This document shows, in pieces, positions 1 through 25,098 of a DNA stretch of 26,339 bases. Source of the stretch: Macrostomum lignano (Eukaryota). How positions within the stretch are numbered: the stretch's first letter is position 1; each line of letters opens with the position of its first letter. The notes under the pieces were generated by a model. It saw only the letters and a list, made by a program, of their open reading frames with translations. It was not told the DNA's origin and did not search any database. The stretch spans positions 1 to 26,339 of the forward strand of contig NIVC01001927.1 in the NCBI GenBank assembly GCA_002269645.1, given 5' to 3'. Made by a program: the position numbers and the translations under genes.

Positions 1-1169
1 TCCGCGATTCCGGGCGGCTGCCCGCTAAGGTCGACTCGGAAGCCCAGCTTCTCCATCAGTCTCTATCCACGATGTTGTCGCCGCCTGGCGCAACGAAGAA
101 CCGGTGCTGCATCGCCTTGTCGCCGTAGCGCACCTCCAGCTCGGTGACACCACTTAGCTGGATCGCAGTCCGCCGTAGGCACGCAGCTTCGTCGTAGTGG
201 GAGAGGTGACTGCACCTGAGATCCGATCGGCGGTCTGTCGGGACAGCAGCGACACCCTTGCGCCGCAGTCCACCATCAGGCTGACAGCGGTCCTGTCCGG
301 TCCGAGTTCCAGCGTCGCCCGGACCTCCCTGTCGCCACCTGGCACTGCGTAGACTGTGATCACCTCGTCCGCGGCATTGACAACAGCCTGCTGGCTGCGA
401 CAGCAACTCCGGAAGTGGTTTTTCTTGCCACAGGCGTCGCATGTCTTGCCCTTGGCCGGACAGGGGGCCGTCGGTCCGTGGTCTCGCCCGCAGCGTGTGC
501 AAGCGCCGCCGGGTTTGGCCGTCCTGCCAGCTGGTGCTGGGCGGTGCCTCCCCTTTGCAGCGACCTTCTGGCCCCTCGGCTGTCGGATCGATTGGACGGC
601 TGCCGTGCTCGAGGTTGATGGCGCCATCGCCTTGGCTTCTTTGGAGGCTTCCTCGATGGAGACCGCGATGCTGAGTGCTTTCGCCAGGTTGAGGTCCTCC
701 ACCTTCTCCGTCAGCAGCCTCTCTCGGATTCTGGGGTTACTGGTCTTCTCAGCCAGCTGGTCTCTGATGAGATCGTCCTGTATCGCGCCGTAGTTGCACA
801 GCTCCGTCAGCTCCCTCAGGGCTGCCACGAAGGTCTTGACGTCCTCGCCGGGTAGCTGCTGGCGCTGGCGGAAGCGATATCTGGCCACCATCACGTTGGG
901 CTTCTCGCCGAAAATCTTCTCGAGCTCCGCCTTAGTTGCTGCGAACGTGTCGTTCTCCTTGATTGCTTGGCGTGCTCGAGCAACCCGCTGACCTTCGAAT
1001 CCAAGCAGATGGAGCAGAAGGCTCCTCTTCAGCGGTTTCGCCTCTTCCTTCCCTTCGGGCTCCTTGAATTGGGCCGCCTCGTAATAAAATTCAAAGGCCT
1101 CAATCCATCGGCTCCATGGTACTGTCGGTTCGCCAGGAAGGGCGTGGGTGCAGGGATGCTAGCCGCCAT
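1..1169 (-). mobile_element. gag: Ty3/Gypsy (Mag/K02A2.6-like) LTR retrotransposon, internal region: gag with two Zn knuckles fused in frame to an aspartic protease; truncated by the window edge; three apparent 1-bp frameshifts
   Basis: ATG at 1169 lies directly after the PBS. After a shift near 1137 the frame reads PGEPTVPWSRWIEAFEFYY...LLLHLLGFEGQRV...ARYRFRQRQQLPGEDVKTFVAALRELTELCNYG...IRDQL, then CTRCGRDH-x5-C and CDACGKKNH-x4-C knuckles, then protease LMVDCGARVSLL...LRAYGG/TAIQLSG...NIVDRD/LMEKLGF. Frameshifts are near 1137, 169 and 58. Confidence 0.92.
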
Positions 1170-3405: not shown

Positions 3406-3840
3406 AACTTCCAGTCTACAATCCTCCACTCGGCAACCTTCCAGTCTACAGTCCTCCACTCGGCAACCTTCCAGTCTATAGTCATCCAATCGGAAACCTT
3501 CCCAGTCTATAGTCATCCAATCAGCAACTTTCCTGTCTACAATCATCCGATCGGCAACCTTCCAGTCTACAATCATCCACTCGGCAACCTTCCAGTCTAC
3601 AATCATCCACTCGGCAACCTTCCAGTCTACAATCATCCAATCGGCAACCTTCCAATCTACAATCATCCAATCGGCAACCTTCCAGTTTATAGTCATCCAA
3701 TCGGCAACCTTCCAATCTACAATCATCCAATCGGCAACCTTCCAGTTTATAGTCATCCAATCGGAAACCTTCTAGTCTACAATCATCCAATCGGCAACCT
3801 TTCCGTCTACAATCATCAACTCGGCAACCTTCCAGTAGAC
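3406..3840. repeat. 30-bp minisatellite (AATCATCCAATCGGCAACCTTCCAGTCTAC), ~14 copies
   Basis: Tandem units read directly; the array ends ~470 bp upstream of the CLCA start codon. Confidence 0.95.
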
Positions 3841-4308: not shown

Positions 4309-4479
4309 ATGAAGCTCATGAATTGTGAATTGATTTGGATTATTCTATCAGCGCTGCTGTGCTGCGGTCAGCTGGGATCATCCGGCATTGAATTGGGATC
4401 GGACGGCCGATTCAGCGGGATTCGAGTGTCCATCGATTCAGGCGTACCTGTCAACAGGACTGCGTTAGGGAAGCTGAAG
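4309..4479 (+). CDS. CLCA: CLCA-like protein, coding exon 1 (signal peptide and N-terminus)
   Basis: MKLMNCELIWIILSALLCCG (signal-like), then IELGSDGRFSGIRVSIDSGVP resembling CLCA IQLNNNGYEGIVVAIDPNVP. Donor AAG|GTGAGT, phase 0. Confidence 0.85.
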
Positions 4480-4649
4480 GTGAGTGAGGAATGCGATTCT
4501 TTGCAAATGACTGATGTAGATAATTAGGTAAATAGTATATGAAGATTAATTAGTCTGTCTAAGTTTTGTTACCGAGGTGAGGTGGGTACGTGAGGTGGCT
4601 AGGTGGGGTAGTGTATGTGCGATGGACTAATGGTTGAGGTTGGGGTGGC

Positions 4650-5186
4650 CTGAAGGTGGGTGGGCTGAAGATGAGGTGAGCTGAAGGTGCGGTGAGCTGA
4701 AGGTGCGGTGAGCTGAAGGTGCGGTGAGCTGAAGGTGCGGTGAGCTGAAGATGAGGTGAGCTGAAGGTGCGGTGAGCTGAAGGTGCGATGCGGTGAGCTG
4801 AAGGTGCGGTGAGCTGAAGATGAGGTGAGCTGAAGGTGCGGTGAGCTGAAGGTGTGGTGAGCTGAAGGTGCGATGCGGTGAGCTGAAGATGAGGTGAGCT
4901 GAAGATGAGGTGAGCTGAAGATGAGGTGAGCTGAAGGTGTGGTGAGCTGAAGGTGCGATGCGGTGAGCTGAAGATGAGGTGAGCTGAAGATGAGGTGAGC
5001 TGAAGGTGCGGTGAGCTGAAGGTGCGGTGAGCTGAAGGTGCGGTGAGCTGAAGGTGCGGTGAGCTGAAGGTGCGTTGAGCTGAAGGTGCGGTGAGCTGAA
5101 GGTGCGGTGTGCTGAAGGTGCGGTGAGCTGAAGGTGCGGTGAGCTGAAGGTGCTGTGAACTGAAGGTGCGGTGAGCTGAAGGTGCG
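4650..5186. repeat. 16-bp minisatellite (GTGAGCTGAAGGTGCG / GTGAGCTGAAGATGAG), ~33 copies, CLCA intron 1
   Basis: Tandem units with occasional ATGCG insertions. Confidence 0.95.
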
Positions 5187-5234
5187 ACGGGCTGTGCACT
5201 GAATAACAGAATCCAAATCAAAAAATTGTTCCAG

Positions 5235-5532
5235 ACAGCATTTCAGCTGGCTTCGGAACTCTTGGCCGTGTCCACGAAGCCCGTAATGAACGGCAGGAAG
5301 TCTTACGCTTTCGGCTCGGTGAAATTTCTGCTTCCGGACAGCTGGAGCAGCGCCGGATTGCCGAGTCGCTTTGGAACCAGTGGCAGGCAGGACGAGTTGG
5401 CGCACTTCCGGGTGCACAACGCACAGGATGGGAGCCAGGAGCCGTGGACGCCTCAGCCGTTGGGCTGCGGGAAGCCCGGCCTGTTCACCCTGCTGCCCTG
5501 GCCGGCTGTGACTACGCTGGACGAGGAGACTC
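5235..5532 (+). CDS. CLCA: CLCA-like protein, exon 2
   Basis: Acceptor TTGTTCCAG|, donor C|GTGAGT (phase 1). FGSVKFLLPDSW resembles FKNVAILIPETW; EPWTPQPLGCGKPG resembles EPYTEQMGNCGEKG. Confidence 0.9.
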
Positions 5533-5580
5533 GTGAGTGGCGAGACTTGCTCTCGATCTCGTACACCTCAATCGAATCTC

Positions 5581-5962
5581 AGGACTCAGTCTCACCTTAG
5601 GACTCAGTCTCATCTTTGAGCTGTCAATCTCACCTTAGGACTCGATCTCACGTTAGGACTCGATCTCTCACCTTAAGAACTCAATCTCACCTTAGGACTC
5701 GATCTCACCTTAGGACTCAATCTCACCTTAGGACTCGATCTCACCTTAGGACTCAATCTCACCTTAGGACTCGATCTCTCACCTTAAGGACTCCATCTCA
5801 CCTTAGGACCCAGTCTTACCTTAGGACTCCAAGTCTCATCTTTGAGCTCTCAATCTCACCTTAGGACTCCATCGCACCGTAGGACTCAATCTCACCTTCG
5901 GACTCGATCTCCCCTCAGGACTCAATCTCACCTTAGGACTCGATATCACCTTGGGACTCAAT
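5581..5962. repeat. 18-bp minisatellite (AGGACTCAATCTCACCTT), ~21 copies, CLCA intron 2
   Basis: Tandem units fill most of the intron. Confidence 0.95.
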
Positions 5963-6016
5963 TTCTGAGTGTCTGCCACAGCGAGCTACAGGGAAGCGGG
6001 TTTTCTGTTGTTTCAG

Positions 6017-6534
6017 TCAGCCGCGTCATCCTGCGCGAGTTCAGCCGGCTCCGCTGGGGCGCATTCGCCGAGTTCAACGGGCACGCCGGGCCGCACGGCT
6101 ACGTGAGCGGCAACCGGCTTCACCCGGTGCGCTGCTCGGCCGCCCTGAGCGGCATATTCGCTCACAACGAGACCTACGACAGGTGCAAAATCGACCGGGA
6201 GACGCTGACTTTGGAGCCTAACTGTAGATTCTTTCTAAACCCCGATCAGCCCACAGCCGAGGCGTCGCTTATGTACACCGTCTACATTGGCGCGGTGCGG
6301 CACTTCTGCGCCAGCGTCGGCCAAAGCGGCCTGGCGCACAACCCGGACGCGCCGAACCCGCACTACCGGCACTGCCCGGCCGGAGCCAGCGTGCGAGACG
6401 TGCTAGCGGGCCACGAAGACTTCCGGTTCGGGCCGGAGATAACTGACCCGGACACGAAGATCAACTTTACGGAGGTGACGCCGATAATCGATCGTCGACT
6501 TGTCGTAGTCATGGACGTGTCGCGGAGCATGCGG
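6017..6534 (+). CDS. CLCA: CLCA-like protein, exon 3 (degenerate metalloprotease motif, Cys-rich region, start of vWA)
   Basis: Acceptor GTTTCAG|TC, donor CGG|GTAAAA (phase 0). REFSRLRWGAFAEF corresponds to HEWAHLRWGVFDEY; also VRCSA, ASLMY, HNPDAPN and MIDAS VVVMDVSRSM. Confidence 0.93.
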
Positions 6535-7192
6535 GTAAAATCGCTGGGAAAAGGCCTTTTTAAGCACGCTCGTACTTATACATGAGGGTTGCAGGCTGCA
6601 GGCACCCTGGCCTGGCGCAACTCCTTCGACGACACTGTCCCATTAAAATGTTGAGGCAACTCTGCCCATTCCGCTGGCTCCTGAGAACAATACAAGCGCG
6701 CCAATGCTGTACGCGGCACAGCACTCATGCACACGCTAACACACTCTTTGTGCCTTGTGGGTTGGTCCTCGTGGGTGTGAATCGGCCAATTTTAGACAAT
6801 TGCTTTTGGCCATAACAGTCACGTATTGCCATTTAAAAGTGACAAAGACTCTTCTATTCATCCAAATGCTACGGGCTACACAATATTGCATAGAATTGTT
6901 CAGTCATTCTATCTTTTATGCGTGCTTGCCATGCTTAGAAGTGAAATCGCTTACTAATTAGTAGAAATTCAAGGATAGGAATTGAATACCTTGTCGTTCA
7001 TGCAGAACTCGCGGCTCTTAAAACAAAGAAGAGCAGCTGAACCAGAAGAACCAGCAAAAGTGCCCAATCTACTAAAATGCGACTCACCAAAGATCTCCCA
7101 AGGTCTATCCAGCTGAGGATGAATGCTACTGAATGGATCCTGGGAACCAGTACATCAAAATCAGACCCTCATATCGGTTACTTTCACTTCAG

Positions 7193-7420
7193 GGCCAACC
7201 GTTGGACAAGATGAAGCAGTCGATGCAGAACCTGTTGAGCCAGCAGCTGGCAGACGATGTGCAATGCGCCCTGATCTCATACTCCACGTCTGTGCACATA
7301 CTGGCACCGCTCAGGCAGCTCAACAGCTCGGAGGCTCGGCAAGCTCATTGGGGGCTGGTGAGGAGTCTGACTGCAAGCGGCGTCACCGCCACAGGCGATG
7401 CGATGGCAGCTGCCCTGGAG
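7193..7420 (+). CDS. CLCA: CLCA-like protein, exon 4 (vWA domain)
   Basis: Acceptor CTTTCACTTCAG|, donor GAG|GTAAAA, phase 0/0. CALISYSTSVHILAPLRQLNS...TASGVTATGDAMAAAL is vWA-like. Confidence 0.88.
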
Positions 7421-7699
7421 GTAAAAACATTACAATGGCATTGACGACGGGCCTGCAGCTCTTGCTGAGATTTACTCGTATGATCATGCGTAACTCGATT
7501 CCATCTCTATTTTTCGATTTAATGCTAGACGAATTTCATTTCTTATTTAAGTCCAGATTTTAAGGCGATCCAGATATTTACGATCCGTACTCCAAAATGC
7601 ACGAAATTTAAATCGATTTTATTAAGGCAGTTTCATAAACAACAACAACAATACAAGATACTGTTAAAATGTTTCAAGTGAAAAAAGATAGAACGGTCA

Positions 7700-7935
7700 C
7701 CAAATATGTGCCGTTGCGCTGTCGACTGAATGCAGCCAGCAGGCAGTCGACGAAATGCCGAGTGTGCACCTGTCCTCGCCGGTAGGGTGCCTGCAGCGTC
7801 AGCAACAGCATCCCCTGCACCAGCTGCTGGCAGTACAACTCGGCGGGGATGATGCGACCTGCTAGCTGGAGTCGCCGACGGTGCTTGGACGGACTAGACC
7901 GGCGGTACTTCACACTCGCAGCCAGCCAAGTCTTA
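7700..7935 (-). mobile_element. 5'-truncated RTE-like non-LTR retrotransposon fragment (C-terminal end of ORF) in CLCA intron 4
   Basis: HRRRLQLAGRII-AELYCQQLVQGMLLLTLQAPYRRGQVHTRHFVDCLL resembles the RTE-clade post-RT motif RRLRxAGH...LL....RRRGRP...Y/F-xD. A (TTG)n run at ~7637-7653 is a possible tail. Confidence 0.65.
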
Positions 7936-8023
7936 TTGGCCTTCAAAACTTTCTCTCTAAGCCTCTTGGGATTCCTACTTAATTATATTGAAGATGTGAT
8001 CTCCCCTTCATCTCCCACCGCAG

Positions 8024-8332
8024 CTGCTCGGCTGCAACCTGACTCAGCCGTCCCGTTCCAACACCGGCCAAGTCCTGCTGATCACCGATGGCGAGGAGAA
8101 CCACCAGTTGCGCTACAGCCTGAGCGACATCGTCCGGATCGCTGCTCAGACGTCCGTGACTGTGGACACTGTGGCCTTCGGCCGGCTGGCCGACACTCGT
8201 CTAGCCCGACTGTCCGCAACTACTGGAGGCACAGCGCACTTCTCCAGATTCCTGGGCCCCGTTAACGATATGGTGGAGAGTCTCGGACAGGTGGCCGGCC
8301 GAATGGCCGACAGTCCGGATGCCTGGGTCAAC
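8024..8332 (+). CDS. CLCA: CLCA-like protein, exon 5 (vWA C-terminal half)
   Basis: Acceptor TCTCCCACCGCAG|, donor AAC|GTGAGT, phase 0/0. GQVLLITDGEEN resembles SEIVLLTDGEDN; VDTVAFG...LARLSATTGG resembles IHTVALG...LEELSKMTGG. Confidence 0.92.
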
Positions 8333-8360
8333 GTGAGTACTAGCCGCCAGTAGCAGAGAT

Positions 8361-8521
8361 GGCCAGTAGCCAGTGGCCAGTAGCCAGTAGCCAGTAGCCA
8401 GTGGCCAGTAGCCAGTAGCCAGTGGCCAGTAGCCAGTAGCCAGTGGCCAGTAGCCAGTAGCCAGTAGCCAGGAGCCAGTGGCGAGTAGCCAGTAGCCAGT
8501 GGCCAGTAGCCAGTAGCCAGT
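8361..8521. repeat. 7-bp tandem repeat (GCCAGTA/GCCAGTG), ~23 copies, CLCA intron 5
   Basis: Directly visible. Confidence 0.95.
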
Positions 8522-8556
8522 CTGATTCCAGCCTTCACAATGCCCTTTCCACACAG

Positions 8557-8796
8557 CTGATTTCAAGCCAGCTCCGAAGCAGCCGCAACGCCACACCAGC
8601 GGCGCTCAGTTTTACCGTCGACTCTTCAGTGAGCGGCGCCGGTCTGCAGGCTTTCGTTATTGGCGCAGTCAGGCCGGCGCGGGTTCTGCTGCACCTGGCG
8701 CCAGTTGGCGACGCCCTCGACGCTGCAGTCGAGGAGGATCTGCAAGGCGATGTGCAACTGGGCAGCGGGCTGCTGCGGCTGAAAGGAAGAATTCGG
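8557..8796 (+). CDS. CLCA: CLCA-like protein, exon 6 (beta-sheet-rich domain)
   Basis: Acceptor CCCTTTCCACACAG|, donor CGG|GTGAGG, phase 0/0. LSFTVDSSVSG resembles GTVIVDSTVG. Confidence 0.85.
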
Positions 8797-8908
8797 GTGA
8801 GGAGCGACTCACCGTGCTGCTCAGCTCACAGGCTAGTCTAGCAATCCATTCTGTTCCTAAATCTAAAGATAGCCTTAGACTCTAGAATTATCTGTCAAAC
8901 ATAAGAGA

Positions 8909-9039
8909 CTCATGGGGGAATTTCTAAGACGTCAAGGTTCATGGAGGGAATTGCTGAGATTTCAAGGCTCATGAGGGAATCGATGAGATGCGAAGGCTCA
9001 TGGGGAATTGCTGAGATGTCAAGGCTTATGGGGGAATCC
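8909..9039. repeat. Degenerate ~29-bp tandem repeat (CTCATGGGGGAATTGCTGAGATGTCAAGG), ~4.5 copies, CLCA intron 6
   Basis: Units of 28-30 bp. Confidence 0.85.
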
Positions 9040-10041
9040 ATTGATTAGACTAGCAATCCATTAAGCTGTTTATCGAGTAGTTTATAGAATTACGGTATTA
9101 AAAGTACAAGATAATTACTCTAAGTAGCTTAACAAGCTGTAAACGCTGTACATTATCACTGTTAATCTGGGCAGGTAACTCGAAATCTAGTGTATTAACC
9201 AGAATGATTTTGATAAGCTTTCTACTCTCTATCCACCTATGCATGCACAACGCATTTCTGCCATAATTCAAGCCTTTAAATGCGGATAATTGCAGGAATT
9301 CCTATAGCAATGGCGTTGGAATGCAGCAAAAATTATTGCTTCTGCTATACAGCCTGTCCCCTGTTCTTCCCAGCTTCACTTTTTATCATCATCGCAAGCA
9401 TAAACTCGGACGGCCCAGGGCCGTTCCTTATCGAATTTGCAAGAACAGCCATATTTGCTGGCAATTATGATTATTTACCGAAACTCCTGCAGTTTTCACA
9501 TGCAAATCTTCTACCTGATAGCTATAGAAATTCTCGTTCAAGCGGTTGCTCGCCGTCTGCGGCCACACAAAAAGTGCATCGTGTCCTTACTAAATAGGCC
9601 TTCAGGTTCCTATAGCAACCATTTCCCATGACTTTGAAGTCCCAGCTCCTTGAAGAGTCAAGAGCATCTTTTAGCACGGGGCTCTGATCTCTGATTCTCT
9701 CTGGCGGTAAACCCATGCGGTCCCGTGAGAGTTGAGATCAGGTTGGCTGTGGTCTTGGGTTGGGAGTCGCAATGCCCTCCTTAGTCCTCGGGTTCGATGC
9801 CACAATAATTTTAGACTCGGAGACTGGCCCACACCGCCAAGGCACAGAGATTGTACACATGCGTGACGACGAGAAAGTGAGAGCCACTGTCCACCCTGTG
9901 TGAGCGTGTGCCCGCGTACTTTTTCAACTCAGCCTCCTTGCAAACTTTTCATGCTGACGGAGTAGAGCCCAAAAGCTTTATTTTCATGCTTAATCTCAGC
10001 TCAACCAGCTTGAACTCTTTTCCAACCGAACTCCAACGCAG

Positions 10042-10345
10042 CCGGGCCGGTGGAAGCTGTACGTGTCTGTGTTGCCCACTGCCAGCCAATCGGAGGCCGC
10101 CACGTCACTCTACCATTCTGTCCTGATCTCGGGCCAGCCGGCCGCCTCTGATTGGCCGCCAGTCAGACTAACCGGCTTTCTCAGCCAATTGGAGGCGAGG
10201 CTCGACTCGAGCAGCCGGCATTCGGTGCACGCGTACTTGCACCGCGGCTCCGCTGACGGATTCGTGCGTCCGGCCGAGCTCTGGGCCAGCGTCGAATCTG
10301 ACGATGGCACCGTCGCCAACTTTCAGCTGTTCGATCACGGAGCTG
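10042..10345 (+). CDS. CLCA: CLCA-like protein, exon 7
   Basis: Acceptor CTCCAACGCAG|, donor G|GTGAGT (phase 1). PGRWKLYV resembles VGTWKYSL; WASVESDDGTVANFQLFDHGAG resembles TALIESVNGKTVTLELLDNGAG. Confidence 0.9.
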
Positions 10346-10592
10346 GTGAGTGAAATCTGTGCAGCCTGGAGATTTTGCAAAGATTATTGATTTTTGAACA
10401 GCTCTGAACGGGGTTTCGCCATAGACAAATAAGATTGGAGCAACTGAAAAGCCACCGATGCCATTTTATTAAAACGGTAGCATTATTTGTACACGAAGAC
10501 AGTTTTCCTCACGTTTCACAGTCAATATCGTCTGCCTTGCAGTCGTCTGTTAGCGCAAATCGTAAAGCCAAACTCCGTGCACCTGTTGTCAG

Positions 10593-10871
10593 GCGCTGAC
10601 GTGTCACCCAACGATGGCATTTATTCTGCCTACCTGCCGCTGCACCGGATGTCCGGGCCGCCGCAGGACTACAGCGTCCGCCTGCGGAGCCTCAGCCCAG
10701 TTGACCGAGTCGCCTCCGCTGGCAAGTTCACCGTCACCGCGGTCGACTCAGTCGATTTGGCCCGTCTGCCGCCGACTCGCGTGACCGACTTCGGCTGCAC
10801 TGTCAATGCCACCAGCGGCCGGCTGCGGATGCGCTGGACCTCCGTTGGCGACCAGCTGGACAGTGGCGCTG
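10593..10871 (+). CDS. CLCA: CLCA-like protein, exon 8 (end of beta domain, start of FnIII-like domain)
   Basis: Acceptor CTGTTGTCAG|GC, donor G|GTGGGT (phase 1/1). ADVSPNDGIYSAY resembles ADATKDDGVYSRY; LPPTRVTDF resembles FPPGQITDL; MRWTSVGDQLDSG resembles LTWTAPGDDYDHG. Confidence 0.92.
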
Positions 10872-11099
10872 GTGGGTTCTGTGTGGATTGCGCATGGCTG
10901 CTGATTGGGCATTGTGTGTCTCAGTAGTCTCAGTAGTCATTTGTCTTTCGTGTCTGCGTGCCCTTCGATTCTACCTTGAAATTCTACTCTTACTTTTACC
11001 TCTATTTGTGTTGAAAACTTTTTTCCGATGGTGTCTCCAGTGTTTGTGTTGTCGGGCTGTATTCCTTTTATGTCTTCAAGAATTTTCTTCTGTGTCCTA

Positions 11100-11800
11100 T
11101 TATGTGTCTTTACCATGTGTCTTCCGGTCTTCCAATTGTTTCTTTCTGTGTTCTCGAGTCTTCCAGTTGTGTCTTCAGTGTGTATTTCTGTGTTCTCGAG
11201 TCTTCCAGTTGTGTCTTTAGTATGTGTCCTCCGGTCTTCCATTTTTTCCAAGGACTACTTAAGTAGATATATACGTTACTTTAGTCATCCTTGATTTTGT
11301 CTTTATGTATTCTCCATTCTTCGAATTGTGTCTTTAATGTGTGTTCTCCGGTCTTCCAATTGTGTCTTTATTTTGTCTTCCGGTCTTTCAATTGTGTCTT
11401 TAATTTGTGTCTTCCGTCTTCCAATTGTGTCTTTAATTTGTCTTCCGGTCTTCCAATTGTGTCTTTAATTTGTCTTCCGGTCTTTCAATTGTGTCTTTAA
11501 TTTGTGTCTTCCGTCTTCCAATTGTGTCTTTAATTTGTCTTCCGGTCTTCCAATTGTGTCTTTAATGTGTCTTCCGTCTTCCAATTGTGTCTTTATTTTG
11601 TCTTCCGGTCTTTCAATTGTGTCTTTAATTTGTGTCTTCCGTCTTCCAATTGTGTCTTTAATTTGTCTTCTAGTCTTCCAATTGTGTCTTTAATTTGTGT
11701 TCCTCGGTCTTCCAATTGTGTCTTTAATATGTGTCTTCCGGTCTTCCAATTGTGTCTTTAATATGTGTCCTCCAGTCTTCCAATTGTGTCTTGAATATGT
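11100..11800. repeat. ~32-bp pyrimidine-rich minisatellite (TCTTCCAATTGTGTCTTTAATTTGTGTCTTCCG[G]), ~20 copies, CLCA intron 8
   Basis: Variable-length tandem units, most homogeneous at 11320-11790. Confidence 0.92.
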
Positions 11801-11831
11801 ATCTGATTGTATCCGCCTGCCATCTCTCCAG

Positions 11832-12814
11832 CAAGCCGCTACTTGATTCGAGCATCCGCCAACCGCAGCCTGCTGGAGCTCGACTTCGCATCAGCAGACG
11901 ACGTAGGGGCGGCCGCCCAGCTGCCCTCGGTGCCCTCCGGGCAGCCCATGACGCTGGAAGTTGCAGCTGCCGACGAGCTGCCCAGCTACCCATCCGTCAC
12001 ATTCTACCTGGCAGTGCGGGCCAACAACTCAGCAGGCGTGCTCAGCCAGCTGTCCAATGTGGCTGCCGTGCAGCTGACCATGCCCGACAATCTGGCTGAG
12101 ATTGGCGTCGACGTTGGGGGCGAAAGCTCAACATCTAGCACAGAATCCAGCACGACATCTAGCTCAGAATCCAGCACGGCATCTAGTACAGAATCCAGCA
12201 CGACATCTAGCACAGAATCCAGCACGACATCTAGTACAGAATCCAGCACGACATCTAGCTCAGAATCCAGCACGGCATCTACTACAGAATCCAGCACGAA
12301 ATCTAGCTCAGAATCCAGCACGACATCTAGCTCAGAATCCAGCACGACATCTAGCTCAGAATCCAGCACGACATCTAGCTCAGAATCCAGCACGGCATCT
12401 ACTACAGAATCCAGCACGACATCTAGCTCAGAATCCAGCACGGCATCTACTCCAAAATCCCACACGACATCTAGCTCAGAATCCAGCACGACATCTAGCT
12501 CAGAATCCAGCACGGCATCTACTCCAAAATCCCACACGACATCTAGCTCAGAATCCAGCACGACATCTAGCTCAGAATCCAGCACGACATCTAGCTCAGA
12601 ATCCAGCACGACATCTAGCACAGAATCCAGCACGACAACAGGGCTGGATTCTAGTAAACACAGTCAGAGTTGGTGGTCATACATGGTAATTGTTTTGGCC
12701 CTAATTTTCGCACCTTCAATTGCAGCATTATTAGGGTTGTTCTTACTGTTTGTTCACTCGAAACTCCCGAGCAGAAGCCTTCATCTACGCAATAAAAAAG
12801 TATATCCAATCTGA
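11832..12814 (+). CDS. CLCA: CLCA-like protein, terminal exon 9 (FnIII end, Ser/Thr mucin-like stalk, TM helix, short cytoplasmic tail)
   Basis: Acceptor CATCTCTCCAG|CA (phase 1). ASRYLIRAS resembles AHKYIIRIS; FYLAVRANNSAGVLSQLSNVA resembles LFIAIQAVDKVDLKSEISNIA; TM ~12683-12754; stop TGA at 12812-12814. The exons sum to 3330 nt (1109 aa plus stop). Confidence 0.92.
12131..12634 (+). repeat. Coding 24-bp tandem repeat (ACATCTAGCTCAGAATCCAGCACG = TSSSESST) x21
   Basis: 21 in-frame 8-aa units counted, with variants ASTTESST and ASTPKSHT. Confidence 0.95.
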
Positions 12815-14089: not shown

Positions 14090-14460
14090 ACCCAATATAC
14101 ACGCAGGCGTGAGGTGGGTTTCGTGAGGGTCGGAATGAGTCCCTTACCCCACAGGAAATTTTCAGCAATGTACATTCAATACTGCATGCGCGGGGCGTGA
14201 GGTGGGTGTCGGGAGGTTGAGAATGAGTCCCTTACCCCACTGATAATTTTCAGCAATGTACATCCAATACTGTACACATGGGGCGTGAGGTGGGTGTCGG
14301 GAGGGTTTGAATGCGTCCCTTACCCCACTGATAATTTTCAGCAATGTACATCCAATACTGTACACATGGGGCGTGAGGTGGGTTTCGTGAGGGTTGGAAT
14401 GAGTCCTTTACCCCACAGGTAATTTTCAGCAATGTACATCCAAAACTGTACACGCGGGAC
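14090..14460. repeat. 88-bp tandem repeat, ~4 copies
   Basis: GGCGTGAGGTGGG recurs at 14106, 14194, 14282 and 14370. Confidence 0.93.
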
Positions 14461-15040: not shown

Positions 15041-15081
15041 GAGTGAGAGTGAGAGTGAGAGTGAGATTGGGAGCGAGTGCA

Positions 15082-15120
<39 letters not shown>

Positions 15121-15219
15121 TTAGGAGCGAGTGCAAGAGTGAGAGTGAGAGTGAGAGTGAGATTAGGAGCGAGTGCAAGAGTGAGAGTGAGAGTGAGAGT
15201 GAGATTGGGAGCGAGTGCA

Positions 15220-15274
<55 letters not shown>

Positions 15275-15322
15275 CAACGAGATTGAGAGTGACAGTGAGA
15301 TTGAGAGTGAGGGTGAGAGTTG
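15041..15322. repeat. (GAGAGT)n compound microsatellite, interrupted four times by GATT(G/A)GGAGCGAGTGCAA
   Basis: Directly visible. Confidence 0.95.
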
Positions 15323-17203
15323 AGAGAGCAAAAGGCGAGCAAAAGGCGAGCTAAAAGTGGCAATAAGCAAACACGGGCAGAAAGCAAAAGTTGTATTTGC
15401 AAAGTTGAATAAAAGTTTTCAAAGATGCAAAACAGACCAGCAATGCGACTTCGGCGCTACCAGGAGCTCGTATCCTGCATTGCAGTGACGAAACTCTATT
15501 GGGAGTGGAGCATGCGGTGCTGTTTGTGTTTTTGGCGCAAATTCAAATTGACGCAGCGGCAAAATCAGCAGCCAGAGAGAGAGCGTGAGACAGAGAACAG
15601 AAAAATTGAAATCCCACGCAAGCGTGACAGGCGAATGGCGCAGGATGTCGGCTAGAAAATCAATCCTCATCACGATGTGTCGCGGCGGGGAAAGGAAGAG
15701 AGGCCGGCATGGCGGAATCCGTATGCAAGTCAAATCTCCAGTCTGGGCCAAAATCTCTCCATGCTCTGGCCGAGATCAAAATCGAGTCTTCAATTTTCTG
15801 CCAACAGGAATTCGGCTGACCGATTGGGGGCCGAGAGCAGCAGATGGACTGGCGGTTGTCTGCCCGCTAGCTGAAGTAGGCGCTGCTCACTTTGAGTACA
15901 ATGGCCCCCTGGGGCGCACGGGGCTCAAGACTGAAGAAATATTCTTTACTCACTCGCCAACTAAAATATTCGGTTGGTTTTTGAACGGTAAAGGAGTTTT
16001 AGCAGGATTGAATAAATCCCCTCTCAGGAGAAAGTTCATCTCAGTTATTTTTGTAGCGTCCCCCAAGTAGCCAGCGTCTGATCGCAGCTGATTAATATTC
16101 ATGTCAACTTTTAATGGAAATCTACACGATGTTAGAAATTATCTGAGCGAGCTCCGGTTGGCTTGCATTAATCTTTAAAACCAGTTAATTGTTGCCAAAA
16201 TGTACAGTTAGATGCACTGGGACTTATTCTGTTTGTTTCCTGGCATAGTCTGGTTTTGGACGAGCCATCCGGATGGCTGATCCTTCTGAGAGGGGGTTGA
16301 AACGGAAAAATTAAAACGGCTAAAAAGAGAGAAATCCCAAGGGATGAGGCTAAAACAGCAGGTCCACCTTGAGAACACTGAATTTAAATCTTGCCCTACA
16401 AGGCACCGCACCATACGGGAGCCAAGGTTTTGTTTTTACGGGGCTCAAATATTCGCACTGCAACGGTGGCAATTCAGCCGTGACCAAATTACGCATGCAT
16501 GTGAGCATGCTTAATGTTTTGTTTATCCAGTGCCATGCAGTTGCCCCGTGATAAAAGATGACATTGTGGACTTTTAAATGAGTATTTACTATCGGGCTGG
16601 CGTTCTTAGTCACTCGGGCCACCCCCGCAACGGGATGATGGTCAAAGGCTGGACGGGTCCTCACTGGCCCCCTTGCCCATGGCCTCAACCCCTACTGACG
16701 TTTTCACGACTCGGATCAACCAGTGGGTGGCATCCAAGCACAGGAAGAGGCGGACTAAGGTCCCGACTGTCGGCAGTCCCGCGCTGCCGTCCCCTGTCCC
16801 TCTTCCGTCCTCGGACTCAACATCAGGGCGGTAAGTAGCCTCCTTGGGACCACCCTTACCTTCCAAAGAAAAATCCGTAGTGAGGAATACCCATTCTGCC
16901 TCTTCGGTGTTGAGAATCTGCAATCGTCTTGCCTTTACTCAAGACAGGCTCGCCTTCCTCGGCCCAAACCTGGACCTCTCCGACGTTTTCAGGCCCAACA
17001 ATTTCTGCCATTTCCTCCGCTACCTAAGGGAGCCCCCCTTCTGAGAGAGAACTATTTCAACTTCCATTTGAAGCAGCAGGACAGTCGAAAAATGTCTTAT
17101 TCGCCATCGCACCCGATTCCAACTGCCTGTGGTCTGTGGGCGGCTGGAGTAGCCCATCTCGGGGTGTGCGGTATGTGCGATTTTGAGTGCGTAATTATCT
17201 TAA

Positions 17204-17953
17204 CCATAGTTCTATAGAGAGCGCGAGTTCTAGAGAGCGCGAGAGAGCGCGAGTTCCATAGACAGCGCAAGTTCTAGAGAGCGCGAGAGAGCGCGAGTTC
17301 CATAGACAGCGCGAGTTCCATAGACAGCGCGAGTTCCATAGACAGCACGAGTTCCATGACAGCACGAGTTCATAGACAGCAGAGTTCCATTGACAGCACG
17401 AGTTCCATAGACAGCACGAGTTTCATAGACAGCACGAGTTCCATTGACAGCACGAGTTCCATAGACAGCACGAGTTCCATAGACAGCGCGAGTTCCATAG
17501 ACTGCACGAGTTTCATAGACAGCAGAGTTCCATAGACAGCACGAGTTCCATAGACTGCACGAGTTCCATAGACAGCGCGAGTTCCATTGACAGCACGAGT
17601 TCCATAGACAGCACGAGTTCCATAGACAGCACGATTTCAATTGACAGAAAGTGTTTCATAGACAGCACGAGTTTCATAGACAGCAGAGTTCCATAGACTG
17701 CACGAGTTCCATAGACAGCACGAGTTCCATTGACAGCACGAGTTCCATAGACAGCACGAGTTTCATAGACAGCAGAGTTCCATAGACTGCACGAGTTCCA
17801 TAGACAGCACGAGTTCCATTGACAGCACGAGTTCCATAGACAGCACGAGTTCCATAGACAGCACGAGTTCCATAGACAGCACGATTTCAATTGACAGAAA
17901 GTGTTTCATAGACAGCACGAGTTTCATAGACAGCACGAGTTTCATAGACAGCA
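17204..17953. repeat. 18-bp minisatellite (CATAGACAGCACGAGTTC), ~40 copies, with a 250-bp higher-order duplication
   Basis: The variant block ACGATTTCAATTGACAGAAAGTG occurs at 17631 and 17881. Confidence 0.95.
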
Positions 17954-18574: not shown

Positions 18575-19447
18575 ATGGACCCGAAAAGCGATATGCTGGA
18601 GAGGGCGCTGGAGGAGGCGGACGATTCCGACTGGCGCACCGATCTCGGAGGCGACCCTGTTGAGCAGCGGCGGCAGCTAGGTAGTAAGTCGAAAAGCCGG
18701 CACAACTATCGCAGGCGGATGCTGTGCGCCAATTTGCAGAGCTTTGCGCACAGGACGTCCGCGCACGGGCTTGGCAGATTCTTCTCGCAGCAGGTGCCCT
18801 GGCTGCGGGGGCTGTGGGCTCTGGTGGTGTTCGGAGCCATGACTGGCCTCACGCTGCACACCTACAAGCAGATCAGCCTGTTTCGAGCCTATCCGGTGTC
18901 CAGCACGACCAGGCTGCTCACCAACCGGTTCACCTTCCCGGATGTGACATTCTGCGATCCGCTGATGAAGAAATTCTTTACCATAGGCTCCAGACAGCTG
19001 CGCAGCGACGTGAACAGAAACAATTACTTTGTGGCCAACTACATGCTGGGCTACCTGGTGTCGGATGAAGAACGAGACGACGAGGCCAGCAGCCGCGTCA
19101 AAGCCATCAAACTGGCCTACGCAACCTTTGAGCACGCGGTGCACACCTGGCCAAAGTTCAACATGACAGCCGCCAGCGCAAGGATATTCGACATGCTGCT
19201 GTACTGCCAGTACAATCAGGAGCGATGCACAGGTAAAAATTTCACAGTGTTCTACCACCGGGACTATGGCAACTGCTTCTCGTTCAAGGCTACTAACAGG
19301 TTTATTCGGTCCAGCGGAGTGGAGAAAGGCCTCGTCCTGGTATTGTACAGTCCCAGCGTCGACGTCAAGCAGAGCATCGACTATTACAGCGACACCGTGA
19401 CGACGGGACTGGAGACCGGCGGGCTCAGGGTGGCCGTGCACCAACAG
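18575..19447 (+). CDS. DEG/ENaC (amiloride-sensitive sodium channel/ASIC family) subunit, large coding exon (291 codons); partial, remaining exons not found in the window
   Basis: FAHRTSAHG (HG gating motif, 18755-18769), TM1 LRGLWALVVFGAMTGLTL, YPV, FPDVTFCD, MLLYCQY...C, YGNCFSF, GVEKGLVLVL, GLRVAVHQQ; donor CAG|GTGAGT, phase 0. Confidence 0.92.
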
Positions 19448-19922
19448 GTGAGTTCCTTAATTTCCTGACCCAGACTTTCCAGCCCTGTCTCTTTGATTCC
19501 TTCTTCCTTCCTGCCTTCGAGGACAACAATAATAGCTTGTAGCCGCAGAAACGTAATCTTTCAAAACGTTTCGTTCCCGACATCAGCTTTTGGACGGGAT
19601 CCCGTCCGAGCACTGAACTCAGTTCACTTGTGGTCAAAACTTTGTACGGCACCCGCAGTTGTCTGGTATCAGATTGTCGTTTGACCTCAGCGCGTGCAAG
19701 GATGCTGGCATTGTGCAGTGCAAGCGCACAATGAAAAATGACAATTGCGTACGCTCGTATTCATCGGACATTTGCCTTTGACTTTGCCTTTGACTATTCC
19801 TGTGTACACTCCTACTTGCTAACTTTTGGAAAACCCATGATGACAAAAGTACATCTGGGGTGTAGATGGGTGATAGTTTGGTTTGAGGGCCCTAAAGGGG
19901 CTTGATAAGGGACAATGACAGC

Positions 19923-20268
19923 TTGTGTCGATGGTTTTGGAGAAAGAAATGGTAGATTGTGTCTATGGTTTTGGAGGTAGACAATGGTAGATTGTGTCTA
20001 TGGTTTTGGAGGTAGACAATGGTAGATTGTGTCTATGGCTTTGGAGTCAGACAATGGTAGATTGTGTCTATGGTTTTGGAGGTAGACAATGGTAGATTGT
20101 GTCTATGGTTTTGGAGGCAGACAATGGTAGATTGTGTCTATGGCTTTGGAGGCAGACAATGGTAGATTGTGTCTATGTTTTTGGAGGTATACAATGGTAG
20201 ATTGTGTCTATGGTTTTGGAGGCAGACAATGGTAGATTGTGTCTATGGTTTTAGAGGCAGAAAATGGT
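19923..20268. repeat. 35-bp minisatellite (GGTAGATTGTGTCTATGGTTTTGGAGG(T/C)AGACAAT), ~10 copies
   Basis: Directly visible. Confidence 0.95.
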
Positions 20269-22540: not shown

Positions 22541-23000
22541 TTGGTTGATGGATGGGACAAGTGGCCATAGACAGTTGGTGGATGGGACAAGTAGCCATAG
22601 ACAGTTGATGGATGGGACAAGTGGCCATAGACAGTTGGTGGATGGGACAAGTAGCCATAGACAGTTGATGGATGGGACAAGTGGCCATAGACAGTTGGTG
22701 GATGGGACAAGTAGCCATAGACAGTTGATGGATGGGACAAGTGGCCATAGACAGTTGGTGGATGGGACAAGTAGCCATAGACCATGGACAGTAGATAGGA
22801 CAAGTGGCCATAGACAGTCGGTACATGAGACAAGTAGCCATAGACAGTTGGTAGATGGGACAAGTGGCCAGAGACCATGGACAGTAGATAGGACAAGTGG
22901 CCATAGACAGTTGGTACATGAGACAAGTAGCCATAGACAGTTGGTGCATGGGACAAGGGGCCATAGACAGTTGGTGGATGGGACAAGAGGCCATAGACAG
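22541..23000. repeat. 30-bp minisatellite (GT(G/A)GCCATAGACAGTTG(G/A)TGGATGGGACAA), ~15 copies, partly a 60-bp dimer
   Basis: Directly visible; two variants alternate. Confidence 0.95.
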
Positions 23001-23815
23001 ACGAAAACCGGTAACTGAATGCCTTACTATAACTTTTGTCTGCGGTCAAGCGGTCAAGCGAGTAAGCGGCATCGAAAGTATTGGAGATTTCCAAGTTCAG
23101 CTAAAGCAGCAAAATTGTTGCAGAAATCGCACGGCACCTTCCTTTGGCCCAGCCAAAAGATTAATGGCATGCAGGTCCGGTCCCGCTTTGCGCAGGCCGC
23201 CGCAACGCAATCAACTATCTGTTTTGGGATAGCATTCGTGTACCAAGGAACGTGTAGTTAGATTAACATTTGCGAAGAAAACATTGGAAGCAGGTCCGTT
23301 GCCAAGGGCTTGCATTGCAGGCGGCATAGCCACCAGTGCAGATACTGATAGGTGGGGCAGACGGTCAGAACGTATGTGAGCGAAGCCGAGACGACTGGCG
23401 CTTGCACTTCCATAAATCAGGGGAAGTTAAGGCAAATAATTCGGTCGGTCAGAGTTATACACCAATTCATCGCGACGGACTGGAAACCCAATGCTGATTA
23501 CCCTAGTAATAGGCACTGTGTAGACTGTATTGAGTAGAATATAATGGAGATAAGAATATGAAATTGCAAAGTATAATACAATACATTAGACTCCAGTAGA
23601 ATTATAGGTAATATCAGAGAAAACTAAAACCCATAGTTCTAGTTGCACCTTGGTTTTATTGCTGGGTAGAGCTTGGTAGAGTAGAAATATTTCAAGAAAT
23701 AATGTTGAGTGAAGAAGAGTGGATAAGACTGAAGTACAAGCGCAGTAGAGTAGACTAAAATAGGTGAAGTAGAGTAGAGCAGAGTAGAGCCGAGTAGAGT
23801 TAAGTAGCTCGTAAA

Positions 23816-24222
23816 ATAGAGTAGAGTAGAGTAGAGTAGAGTAGAGTAGAGTAGAGTAGAGTAGAGTAGAGTAGAGTAGAGTAGAGTAGAGTAGAGTAGA
23901 GTAGAGTAGAGTAGAGTAGAGTAGAGTAGAGTAGAGTAGAGTAGAGTAGAGTAGAGTAGAGTAGAGTAGAGTAGAGTAGAGTAGAGTAGAGTAGAGTAGA
24001 GTAGAGTAGAGTAGAGTAGAGTAGAGTAGAGTAGAGTAGAGTAGAGTAGAGTAGAGTAGAGTAGAGTAGAGTAGAGTAGAGTAGAGTAGAGTAGAGAAGA
24101 GTAGAGTAGAGTAGAGCAGAGTAGAGTAGAGTAGAGTAGAGTAGAGTAGAGTAGAGTAGAGTAGAGTAGAGTAGAGTAGAGTAGAGTAGAGTAGAGTAGA
24201 GAAGAGTAGAGTAGAGTAGAGT
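23816..24222. repeat. (GAGTA)n pentanucleotide microsatellite, ~80 copies
   Basis: Near-perfect run, with a degenerate flank from ~23740. Confidence 0.98.
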
Positions 24223-24929: not shown

Positions 24930-25098
24930 TGGCCATAGACAGTTGGTGAATTTAGGTACAAGTGGCCATAGACAGTTGGTGAATGTAGGTACAAGTGGCC
25001 ATAGACAGTTGGTGAATGTAGGTACAAGTGGCCATAGACAGTTGGTGAATGTAGGTACAAGTGGCCATAGACAGTTGGGGAATGTAGGGACAAGTGAC
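24930..25098. repeat. 33-bp minisatellite (GTGGCCATAGACAGTTGGTGAATGTAGGTACAA), ~5 copies; related to the 22.5-kb array
   Basis: Shares its first 20 nt and the terminal ACAA with the 30-bp unit. Confidence 0.93.

Follow-up and report, generated by a model that had tools for sequence, protein, structure and literature searches.

The 26,339-nucleotide contig NIVC01001927.1 of Macrostomum lignano (assembly GCA_002269645.1; here called the window, meaning the whole stretch of DNA analyzed) carries a CLCA-family gene in which all three catalytic zinc ligands of the metallohydrolase-like (MH) domain are replaced and the segment corresponding to the autocleavage/inhibitory loop is absent. The predicted product thus lacks both the catalytic metal site and the substrate/inhibitory loop and, judging from its sequence, is almost certainly non-proteolytic and non-self-cleaving. 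CLCAs have been studied as mucus-remodelling proteases and as chloride-channel regulators, and the need for proteolysis in their function is debated. On balance, it appears probable that the gene is intact and functional, and that it encodes a type-I membrane glycoprotein with a dead MH domain, incapable of self-cleavage, that would act as a non-enzymatic binding module. It provides a clean full-length example of a CLCA in which three ligands and the autocleavage loop have been lost while the structural zinc site and the metal-ion-dependent adhesion site (MIDAS) have been kept.

Replacement of the catalytic zinc ligands

Positions 6034-6072 (+) translate to REFSRLRWGAFAE where the CLCA consensus reads HExxHxxxGxxDE, the codons being CGC GAG TTC AGC CGG CTC CGC TGG GGC GCA TTC GCC GAG, as given in the original prediction made from the DNA letters. 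In this degenerate motif R163 (6034-36), E164, R167 (6046-48) and A174 (6067-69) stand for H, E, H and D, and the alignment places Phe176 (6073-75, +) at the position of the DEY-motif Tyr. Specifically, in a MAFFT alignment of the gene product with 135 homologues (137 sequences altogether), R163, R167 and A174 align with H156, H160 and D167 of human CLCA1, in columns that are 91%, 89% and 84% conserved across the homologues. These three human residues are the catalytic zinc ligands in a cryo-electron microscopy (cryo-EM) preprint (bioRxiv 10.1101/2025.10.18.683246). The N-terminal sequence of human CLCA1 used for the equivalence of residues was checked against 24 residue identities given in the preprint and agreed in 24 of 24. 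Around the motif E164, R169, G171, F173 and E175 are retained. Where active proteases have HExxHxxxGxxD(E)Y, the gene product therefore reads RExxRxxxGxxAEF, with the three ligands and the Tyr replaced and the Glu and Gly remaining. The loss of both His and of the Asp, asserted in the original prediction, is borne out by these columns, and comparison with metazoan CLCAs, which it had proposed, gave replaced ligand columns alongside conserved structural ones. Its assignment to the CLCA family also holds, with exon 3 alone matching Pfam PF08434 (CLCA; E=3.5e-19).

The minimum path from His, His and Asp codons to those now present comprises three non-synonymous changes (CAY->CGY twice and GAY->GCY) and one synonymous change (CGY->CGG). 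The "several substitutions" first noted at the motif thus amount to at least four base changes, although every amino-acid replacement is a single nucleotide step. Restoration of His by adenosine-to-inosine RNA editing was ruled out on first principles, as editing turns CAC into a CGC-like reading and not the reverse. No alternative His-bearing copy of exon 3 and no second CLCA paralogue were found in the window by tblastn with homologues.

Loss of the autocleavage/inhibitory loop

A second loss, missed in the original prediction, was found in exon 8, where about 45 residues are absent at 10679-10708 (RLRSLS/PVDR). In the alignment this gap sits exactly over human GGVNAARRRVIPQQSGA/LYIPGWIENDEIQWNPPRP and covers human G680-P714 together with its flanks, a segment that in human CLCA1 contains the G694/A695 autocleavage site and the beta6-beta7 extension plugging the active site (bioRxiv 10.1101/2025.10.18.683246). 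The distance between the DG(I/V)YS motif and the signature of the fibronectin type III (FnIII)-like domain is 79 aa in the gene product and 78 aa in P0002, a related transcript-derived sequence, as compared with 123 aa in the human protein and 107-135 aa in 38 other homologues. Exon 8 is a continuous open reading frame (ORF) across the gap, and therefore no exon has been missed there. By both the gap and the spacing, the autocleavage site of an active CLCA protease is missing. Mutation of HExxH abolishes CLCA self-cleavage, single E->Q changes being sufficient in CLCA1, and the CLCA N-terminal fragment interacts only after self-cleavage. The loop deletion is the feature that best explains the loss of the zinc ligands.

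Retained architecture of the product

The product consists, in order, of a signal peptide, the CLCA_N (MH) domain, a VWA domain, a beta-sheet-rich region, a FnIII-like domain, a Ser/Thr stalk, a transmembrane (TM) helix and a short tail. In the spliced protein CLCA_N (PF08434) is matched with E=2.2e-25 and 90.1 bits, against a cut-off of 25.6, over profile positions 6-260 of 266, and is directly followed by VWA (PF00092; 61.3 bits, aa 318-477) with a complete MIDAS (D323, S325, S327, T394 and D427), all in conserved columns. The VWA domain aligns to the crystal structure of the human CLCA1 VWA (6PYO; E=2.7e-8) with the DxSxS, T and D in register.

Closer examination of the MH domain in the alignment revealed that C135, C196, C213, C226, C254, C276, M242, H264 and E175 are all kept. 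Among these, C196 (6133-35), M242 of the Met-turn (6271-73), C254 (6307-09) and H264 (6337-39), spanning 6133-6339 (+), lie in columns that are 94-99% conserved and correspond to human C187, M238, C250 and H255. In human CLCA1, C187, C250 and H255 have been assigned to a second, structural zinc (bioRxiv 10.1101/2025.10.18.683246). Across the 135 homologues 66 columns were at least 80% conserved, and the product keeps the residue in 46 of them, including every Cys, the Met-turn, the second-zinc ligands and the MIDAS. An AlphaFold2 model of the exon-3 fragment had a mean predicted local distance difference test (pLDDT) score of 86.8, with the active-site helix in place (residues 2-13). A Foldseek search of this fragment model against the PDB gave only noise (best E=2.2), and a PDB sequence search with exon 3 gave no match in a copy that did not hold the full-length CLCA1 cryo-EM model; with the full protein, the sequence search returned CLCA1 VWA crystal structures only.

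C-terminal to the beta-sheet-rich region, the family signature of the FnIII-like domain, W-T-A-x-G-D-D-x-D-x-G-T-A-x-x-Y-x-I-R, is present as RWTSVGDQLDSGAASRYLIRAS and aligns with the human, amphioxus and mollusc sequences; the domain was not matched by Pfam fn3. The stalk that follows is mucin-like (172 aa, 81% Ser/Thr) and likely O-glycosylated. It is encoded by a 24-bp tandem repeat of 21 copies (12122-12637, +; 90% match over 12131-12637) that reads (E-S-S-T-T-S-S-S)n and stays in frame throughout. The signal peptide (aa 1-23) was called from hydropathy alone, on the basis of a hydrophobic N-terminus.

Relatives and repeated decay of the zinc site

When 1.84 billion cluster representatives were searched exhaustively with phmmer, the exon-3 translation had 193 matches at E<=0.001. 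A word-indexed protein search with exon 3 or the spliced MH domain found no match, the index search being insensitive here. The nearest relatives include the M. lignano UniRef entries A0A1I8F7L8/A0A1I8FB37, A0A1I8GWG2 and A0A1I8G1G6 and the Logan contig SRR30276804_57662. None exceeds about 50% identity and hence none was taken as an orthologue. Two M. lignano sequences, P0001 and P0003, share 49-51% identity with the product in exon 3 and read HEFAH...N at the zinc site, where the gene reads RExxR..A. P0002, from the Logan contig, shares 32% identity over 878 aa and reads YEFGQ...P; the contig (2973 nt) is intron-less and holds one uninterrupted 907-aa ORF with untranslated regions and a C-terminal hydrophobic anchor. 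P0117 and P0131 from M. lignano (L[FY]xxQ...S) belong to the same clade, as does P0005 from M. lignano, with HEWGH...D and a long loop. The M. lignano CLCA expansion accordingly mixes an apparently active long-loop member (HEWGH..DE) with loop-less members reading HEFAH..N or L[FY]xxQ..S, and the closest full-length relative of the product is an unnamed transcript contig with YEFGQ..P.

In a neighbour-joining (NJ) tree the product grouped with P0001/P0003 in 87% of bootstrap replicates, with P0002 added in 77%, with P0117/P0131 added in 92% and with P0005 added in 94%; grouping of the product with a sea-urchin RExxR protein received 0%. The loop deletion is common to the product, P0002, P0003 and P0117, with P0005 being the long form, and several of the loop-less relatives have degenerate zinc sites. 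HExxH is kept in P0001/P0003 and in P0005, and therefore at least three losses of the zinc site must have occurred in this flatworm-type clade. These losses went to different residues (R/R, Y/Q and L/Q), each a single-nucleotide neighbour of His, a pattern for which relaxed constraint is at least as good an explanation as design. Substituted members also scored lower against the Pfam CLCA profile (26-145 bits) than invertebrate HExxH members (202-264 bits), whereas VWA scores were alike in both groups (50-63 bits), and constraint has therefore changed in the protease domain but not in the VWA domain.

A proposed non-enzymatic module unmasked by loop loss

Canonical CLCA protease would act chiefly on its own inhibitory loop, thereby unmasking the N-terminal MH-VWA module. 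If an ancestor of the clade lost this loop, the module would have become constitutively unmasked: with the loop gone there is nothing to release by self-cleavage, and the catalytic residues would no longer have been needed and could have drifted to residues one step away from His and Asp. The present product would then be a membrane-tethered, non-enzymatic module held off the cell surface on its mucin-like stalk. A putative partner would be bound through the metal-dependent VWA/MIDAS site, with the dead cleft serving as a scaffold or as an extra docking surface. By analogy with CLCA1 and TMEM16A the partner could be a channel, or it could be a matrix or mucus ligand. No TMEM16 gene is present in the window.

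Several points weigh against this scenario. The sister M. lignano genes are loop-less and yet keep HExxH, which means that loss of the loop does not automatically make the protease dispensable; the sister proteins may cleave other substrates in trans. What can be drawn from P0001/P0003 is itself weakened because both models are visibly frameshifted (the UniProt models A0A1I8F7L8 and A0A1I8FB37 look frameshifted), and the tree is an NJ tree built on a divergent alignment. The MH domain has also diverged far (20 of the 66 conserved columns changed; 90 bits in Pfam), which could also mean ongoing decay.

Taken alone, the gene is an annotation-level result that indicates no new mechanism. Together with its relatives, it provides an evolutionary argument, open to testing, that selection maintains the catalytic site for the sake of self-cleavage. 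In a bolder form, which we regard as rather unlikely, the clade would be a natural experiment indicating that the CLCA protease has its own inhibitory loop as essential substrate: after deletion of the loop the zinc site would have become dispensable and decayed at least three times. In the gene described here the Arg pair would have taken over the charge of the zinc, and an open, non-cleaving cleft together with the VWA/MIDAS would form a constitutively active tethered receptor or channel regulator.

Substituted CLCAs as a known class and the Arg pair

Dead CLCA sites as a class are not new and were described in 2013. Lenart et al. 2013 (PMC3650047) reported HExxH in only 72% of CLCA_N domains and its absence in 28%, with H1->R frequent in CLCA_N and the site lost independently five times or more in Metazoa; in the same study substituted zincins were enriched in Arg/Lys at each of the two His positions, and the role of the inactive CLCA forms was given as unknown. 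According to a later paper, the distribution of HExxH in CLCAs has been the subject of a single study. With R at both His positions (typically H1->R and H5->K/R in substituted CLCA_N), the present gene falls into this same class of CLCA_N domains without HExxH. Other substituted CLCAs (P0130, P0150 and P0108) keep a cleavage-loop region of 111-115 aa, whereas the clade of the gene has deleted it, and a literature search found no description of such a joint loss of the cleavage/inhibitory loop in a clade with repeated site decay, nor any paper pairing "CLCA" with "pseudoprotease". To our knowledge, no naturally dead CLCA has been characterized.

The analysis was extended to a census of 150 cluster representatives, 122 of which had HExxH with D, N or E as the third ligand and about 22 of which were substituted. 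Among the substituted representatives, H1 was Arg in 6 of about 13 and H2 was Arg/Lys in 8 of 18. Examples are found in Diadema setosum (XP_072166784.1, REWGRLRWGLFPEF), Ciona (XP_018672742.1, RExxK), Symsagittifera (XP_063727354.1, RExxH) and Amia (XP_066577810.1, RLxxT), none of which is orthologous to the gene. RExxR with loss of the Asp was seen in two representatives, the Diadema protein and a fragment from ENA, neither of which groups with the gene. Holostean CLCA paralogues are degenerate as well, with RLxxT..S in Amia ocellicauda (P0041, XP_066577810.1) and YTxxI..S in Atractosteus spatula (P0085, MBN3318801.1), and dead CLCAs therefore exist in vertebrates too; these paralogues are annotated "CLCA3A-1" and "CLCA1 regulator".

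According to the original prediction, the two Arg may fill the metal site and create a basic binding pocket. Such an adaptive Arg pair would have its guanidinium groups in the former zinc position, would pair with E164 and so stabilize the cleft, and would bind an acidic or glycosylated ligand without cutting it. The enrichment of Arg/Lys at the two positions in substituted zincins and of H1->R in CLCA_N (Lenart et al. 2013), the reappearance of RExxR with a lost Asp outside the group of the gene and the retention of E164 beside the Arg pair are all in keeping with this idea. However, H->R takes a single transition, so that mutational bias would be enough to account for the enrichment, and in the closest dead relatives the positions are Y/Q and L/Q instead of Arg. 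We consider an adaptive Arg pair improbable.

Probably a functional gene rather than a decayed one

The coding frame contains 0 stops in 1123 codons, as compared with 41 and 33 in the other two frames and 5.5 stops per 100 codons in the introns, and GC content at third codon positions (GC3) is 0.757 in the non-repeat coding sequence against a GC content of 0.463 in the introns. The gene is real and, from these sequence features, probably functional rather than decayed. Conservation of the ORF, the splice sites, the LRWG, the Glu and the cysteines, as originally described, was confirmed by the gene model and the alignment. In the description "catalytically dead but selected", the first part is upheld by the ligand loss in the alignment. 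For the second, the ORF and codon bias point to putative purifying selection on the gene. Identity to the closest relatives reaches at most 51% in the best exon and about 32% overall, a divergence at which synonymous sites are saturated for estimates of the ratio of non-synonymous to synonymous substitution rates (dN/dS).

A young pseudogene or a neutrally drifting gene, with the dead site as the earliest damage to show and the ORF still free of stops, would account for the low score of the MH domain (90 bits, against 200-260 in active invertebrate CLCAs) and for its 20 changed columns. No identical or near-identical protein or transcript was found in a collection of 15 billion proteins, and the locus lies in repeat-rich DNA beside a retroelement fragment, which would also suit decay. 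Against this, identity to the nearest relatives is only about 32-36% over the full length, and yet 1123 codons are open and all eight introns are GT-AG; the GC3 contrast is strong (0.76 against 0.46), the structural Cys are all in place together with the second-zinc ligands, the Met-turn and the full MIDAS, the 24-bp coding minisatellite is in frame across its 21 copies, and a related dead form exists as a full-length transcript-like contig (P0002). A decayed pseudogene is thus unlikely given the open frame, the GC3 bias and the retained cysteines, Met-turn and second zinc site, and we hold it to be slightly less probable than an adaptive Arg pair.

The product could also be a still-active metalloprotease in which the catalytic zinc is held by other residues, e.g. 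H181 or H185, and substrates are cut in trans. In favour of this, the site retains its general base E164, both the Gly-turn and the Met-turn, and the active-site helix. There are also two His at 5 and 9 residues past E175, and active CLCA1 orthologues tolerate Asn as the third ligand (bioRxiv 10.1101/2025.10.18.683246). However, not one but all three ligands are gone, and Arg and Ala cannot ligate zinc. The His of the "PH" motif is clade-wide and is also present in HExxH relatives (GPHAF in P0001, GPHFY in P0002 and DPHFY in P0005), and is therefore not compensatory. In addition, the DEY-motif Tyr is lost, and a single E->Q change abolishes CLCA1 cleavage, so that retained activity is very improbable. 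An assembly or base-calling artefact at the motif is hardly credible, as it would require at least four separate base differences in 36 bases with no indel and a clean ORF around them, and comparable decay is seen in independent relatives.

Comparison with other CLCAs and inactive metzincins

The product favoured here, a functional CLCA with a dead MH domain, shares with human CLCA1 the order of domains, the Cys pattern, the Met-turn, the second-zinc ligands, the general-base Glu and the LRWG Gly-turn, with about 28% identity of the MH region to a vertebrate representative. It differs from human CLCA1 by the changes H156/H160/D167 -> R/R/A and Y169 -> F and by the absence of the approximately 45 residues holding G694/A695 and the beta6-beta7 loop. 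Human CLCA1 is, moreover, fully secreted, whereas the product is predicted to be membrane-anchored through a TM segment and has a long mucin-like stalk. In this respect it is more like the mammalian and avian CLCA2, CLCA4 and gCLCA1, which have type-I topology with a C-terminal TM segment and a short tail after the FnIII-like domain (PMC9007345). In these proteins, nevertheless, HExxH is intact, the cleavage site is canonical and the N-terminal product is shed, while the M. lignano product has neither the motif nor the site. Inactive ADAMs, in which HExxH is replaced and which have roles in adhesion, offer the best-studied analogy according to Lenart et al. 2013 (PMC3650047), as they also use a metzincin-fold ectodomain as a non-enzymatic surface module. 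The analogy is functional only, since ADAMs belong to another metzincin family and have a disintegrin/Cys-rich domain instead of VWA.

Gene model

The gene spans 4309-12814 (+) in nine exons (1123 aa), with all eight introns GT-AG and phases consistent. The model was assembled by hand from stop-free stretches and splice signals; tblastn with six homologues reproduced the exon edges, and residues of the transcript-derived P0002 are contiguous across the exon 4/5 and exon 8/9 junctions. Exon 1 (4309-4479, +) holds the start codon, the signal peptide (4309-4377) and the start of CLCA_N, with a Pfam match from aa 33 and the donor AAG/gtgagt. Exon 2 (5235-5532, +; acceptor ttccag/ACA, donor CTC/gtgagt, phase 1) encodes the N-terminal beta-sheet subdomain of the MH domain and was matched in tblastn at 5238-5495 by P0003 of M. 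lignano and by P0016 of abalone. Exon 3 (6017-6534, +) encodes the active-site helix, the Cys-rich C-terminal subdomain and the first VWA strand with the MIDAS DxSxS (6514-6528). Six homologues matched it in tblastn at 6016-6552, and its borders are the acceptor ...tttcag/TCA at 6016/6017 and the donor CGG/gtaaaa at 6534/6535. The VWA domain continues through exon 4 (7193-7420, +), which includes MIDAS Thr394 (7385-87), and exon 5 (8024-8332, +), which includes MIDAS Asp427 (8087-89; LITDGEEN), both placed by alignment to 6PYO and by tblastn.

The beta-sheet-rich region is encoded by exon 6 (8557-8796, +), placed by the gene model, and exon 7 (10000-10345, +; donor CTG/gtgagt, phase 1), which the amphioxus sequence P0004 matched in tblastn at 10039-10347. 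Alternative in-frame acceptors lie at 8572 for exon 6 and at 10009 and 10042 for exon 7 and have no effect on the main argument. Exon 8 (10593-10871, +) covers the counterpart of the CLCA inhibitory domain and the beginning of the FnIII-like domain, as judged from alignment and spacing. Exon 9 (11832-12814, +) contains the remainder of the FnIII-like domain (tblastn with P0002, 11831-12121), the Ser/Thr stalk, the TM helix (12671-12754), a 19-aa cytoplasmic tail and the TGA stop (12812-12814).

Surroundings of the gene

The window has the eukaryotic pattern of GC-rich exons parted by minisatellite-filled introns, and the sharp contrast between GC3 and intron GC is of use for locating exons in this genome. 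Neither the Rfam nor the tRNA scan of the window gave a match. Upstream of the CLCA gene, a 334-aa open frame at 157-1158 (-) showed sub-threshold matches to PNMA/Gag-like (E=2e-4) and aspartyl-protease (E=9e-3) families and is probably a fragment of a long terminal repeat (LTR) retroelement. Downstream, on the same strand and about 5.8 kb from the CLCA stop, a channel gene of the DEG/ENaC/ASIC type has its first coding exon, a large one, at 18575-19465 (+; Pfam ASC PF00858, E=1.3e-27). This exon starts MDPKSDML... and holds the FAHRTSAHGL motif and the first TM segment; an amphioxus protein (36% identity) was its only database match among the matches listed.

Mini- and microsatellite arrays are unusually dense in the window, with periods of 5-97 bp and 4-96 copies. 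They were located at 3408-3836, 4650-5186, 5581-5962, 8362-8521, 11318-11804, 14106-14453, 15041-15326, 17286-17953, 19911-20268, 22544-23000, 23744-24222 and 24930-25096. CLCA introns 1, 2, 5 and 8 hold one array each and the others lie in flanking DNA, with several of the arrays yielding long spurious ORFs on both strands.

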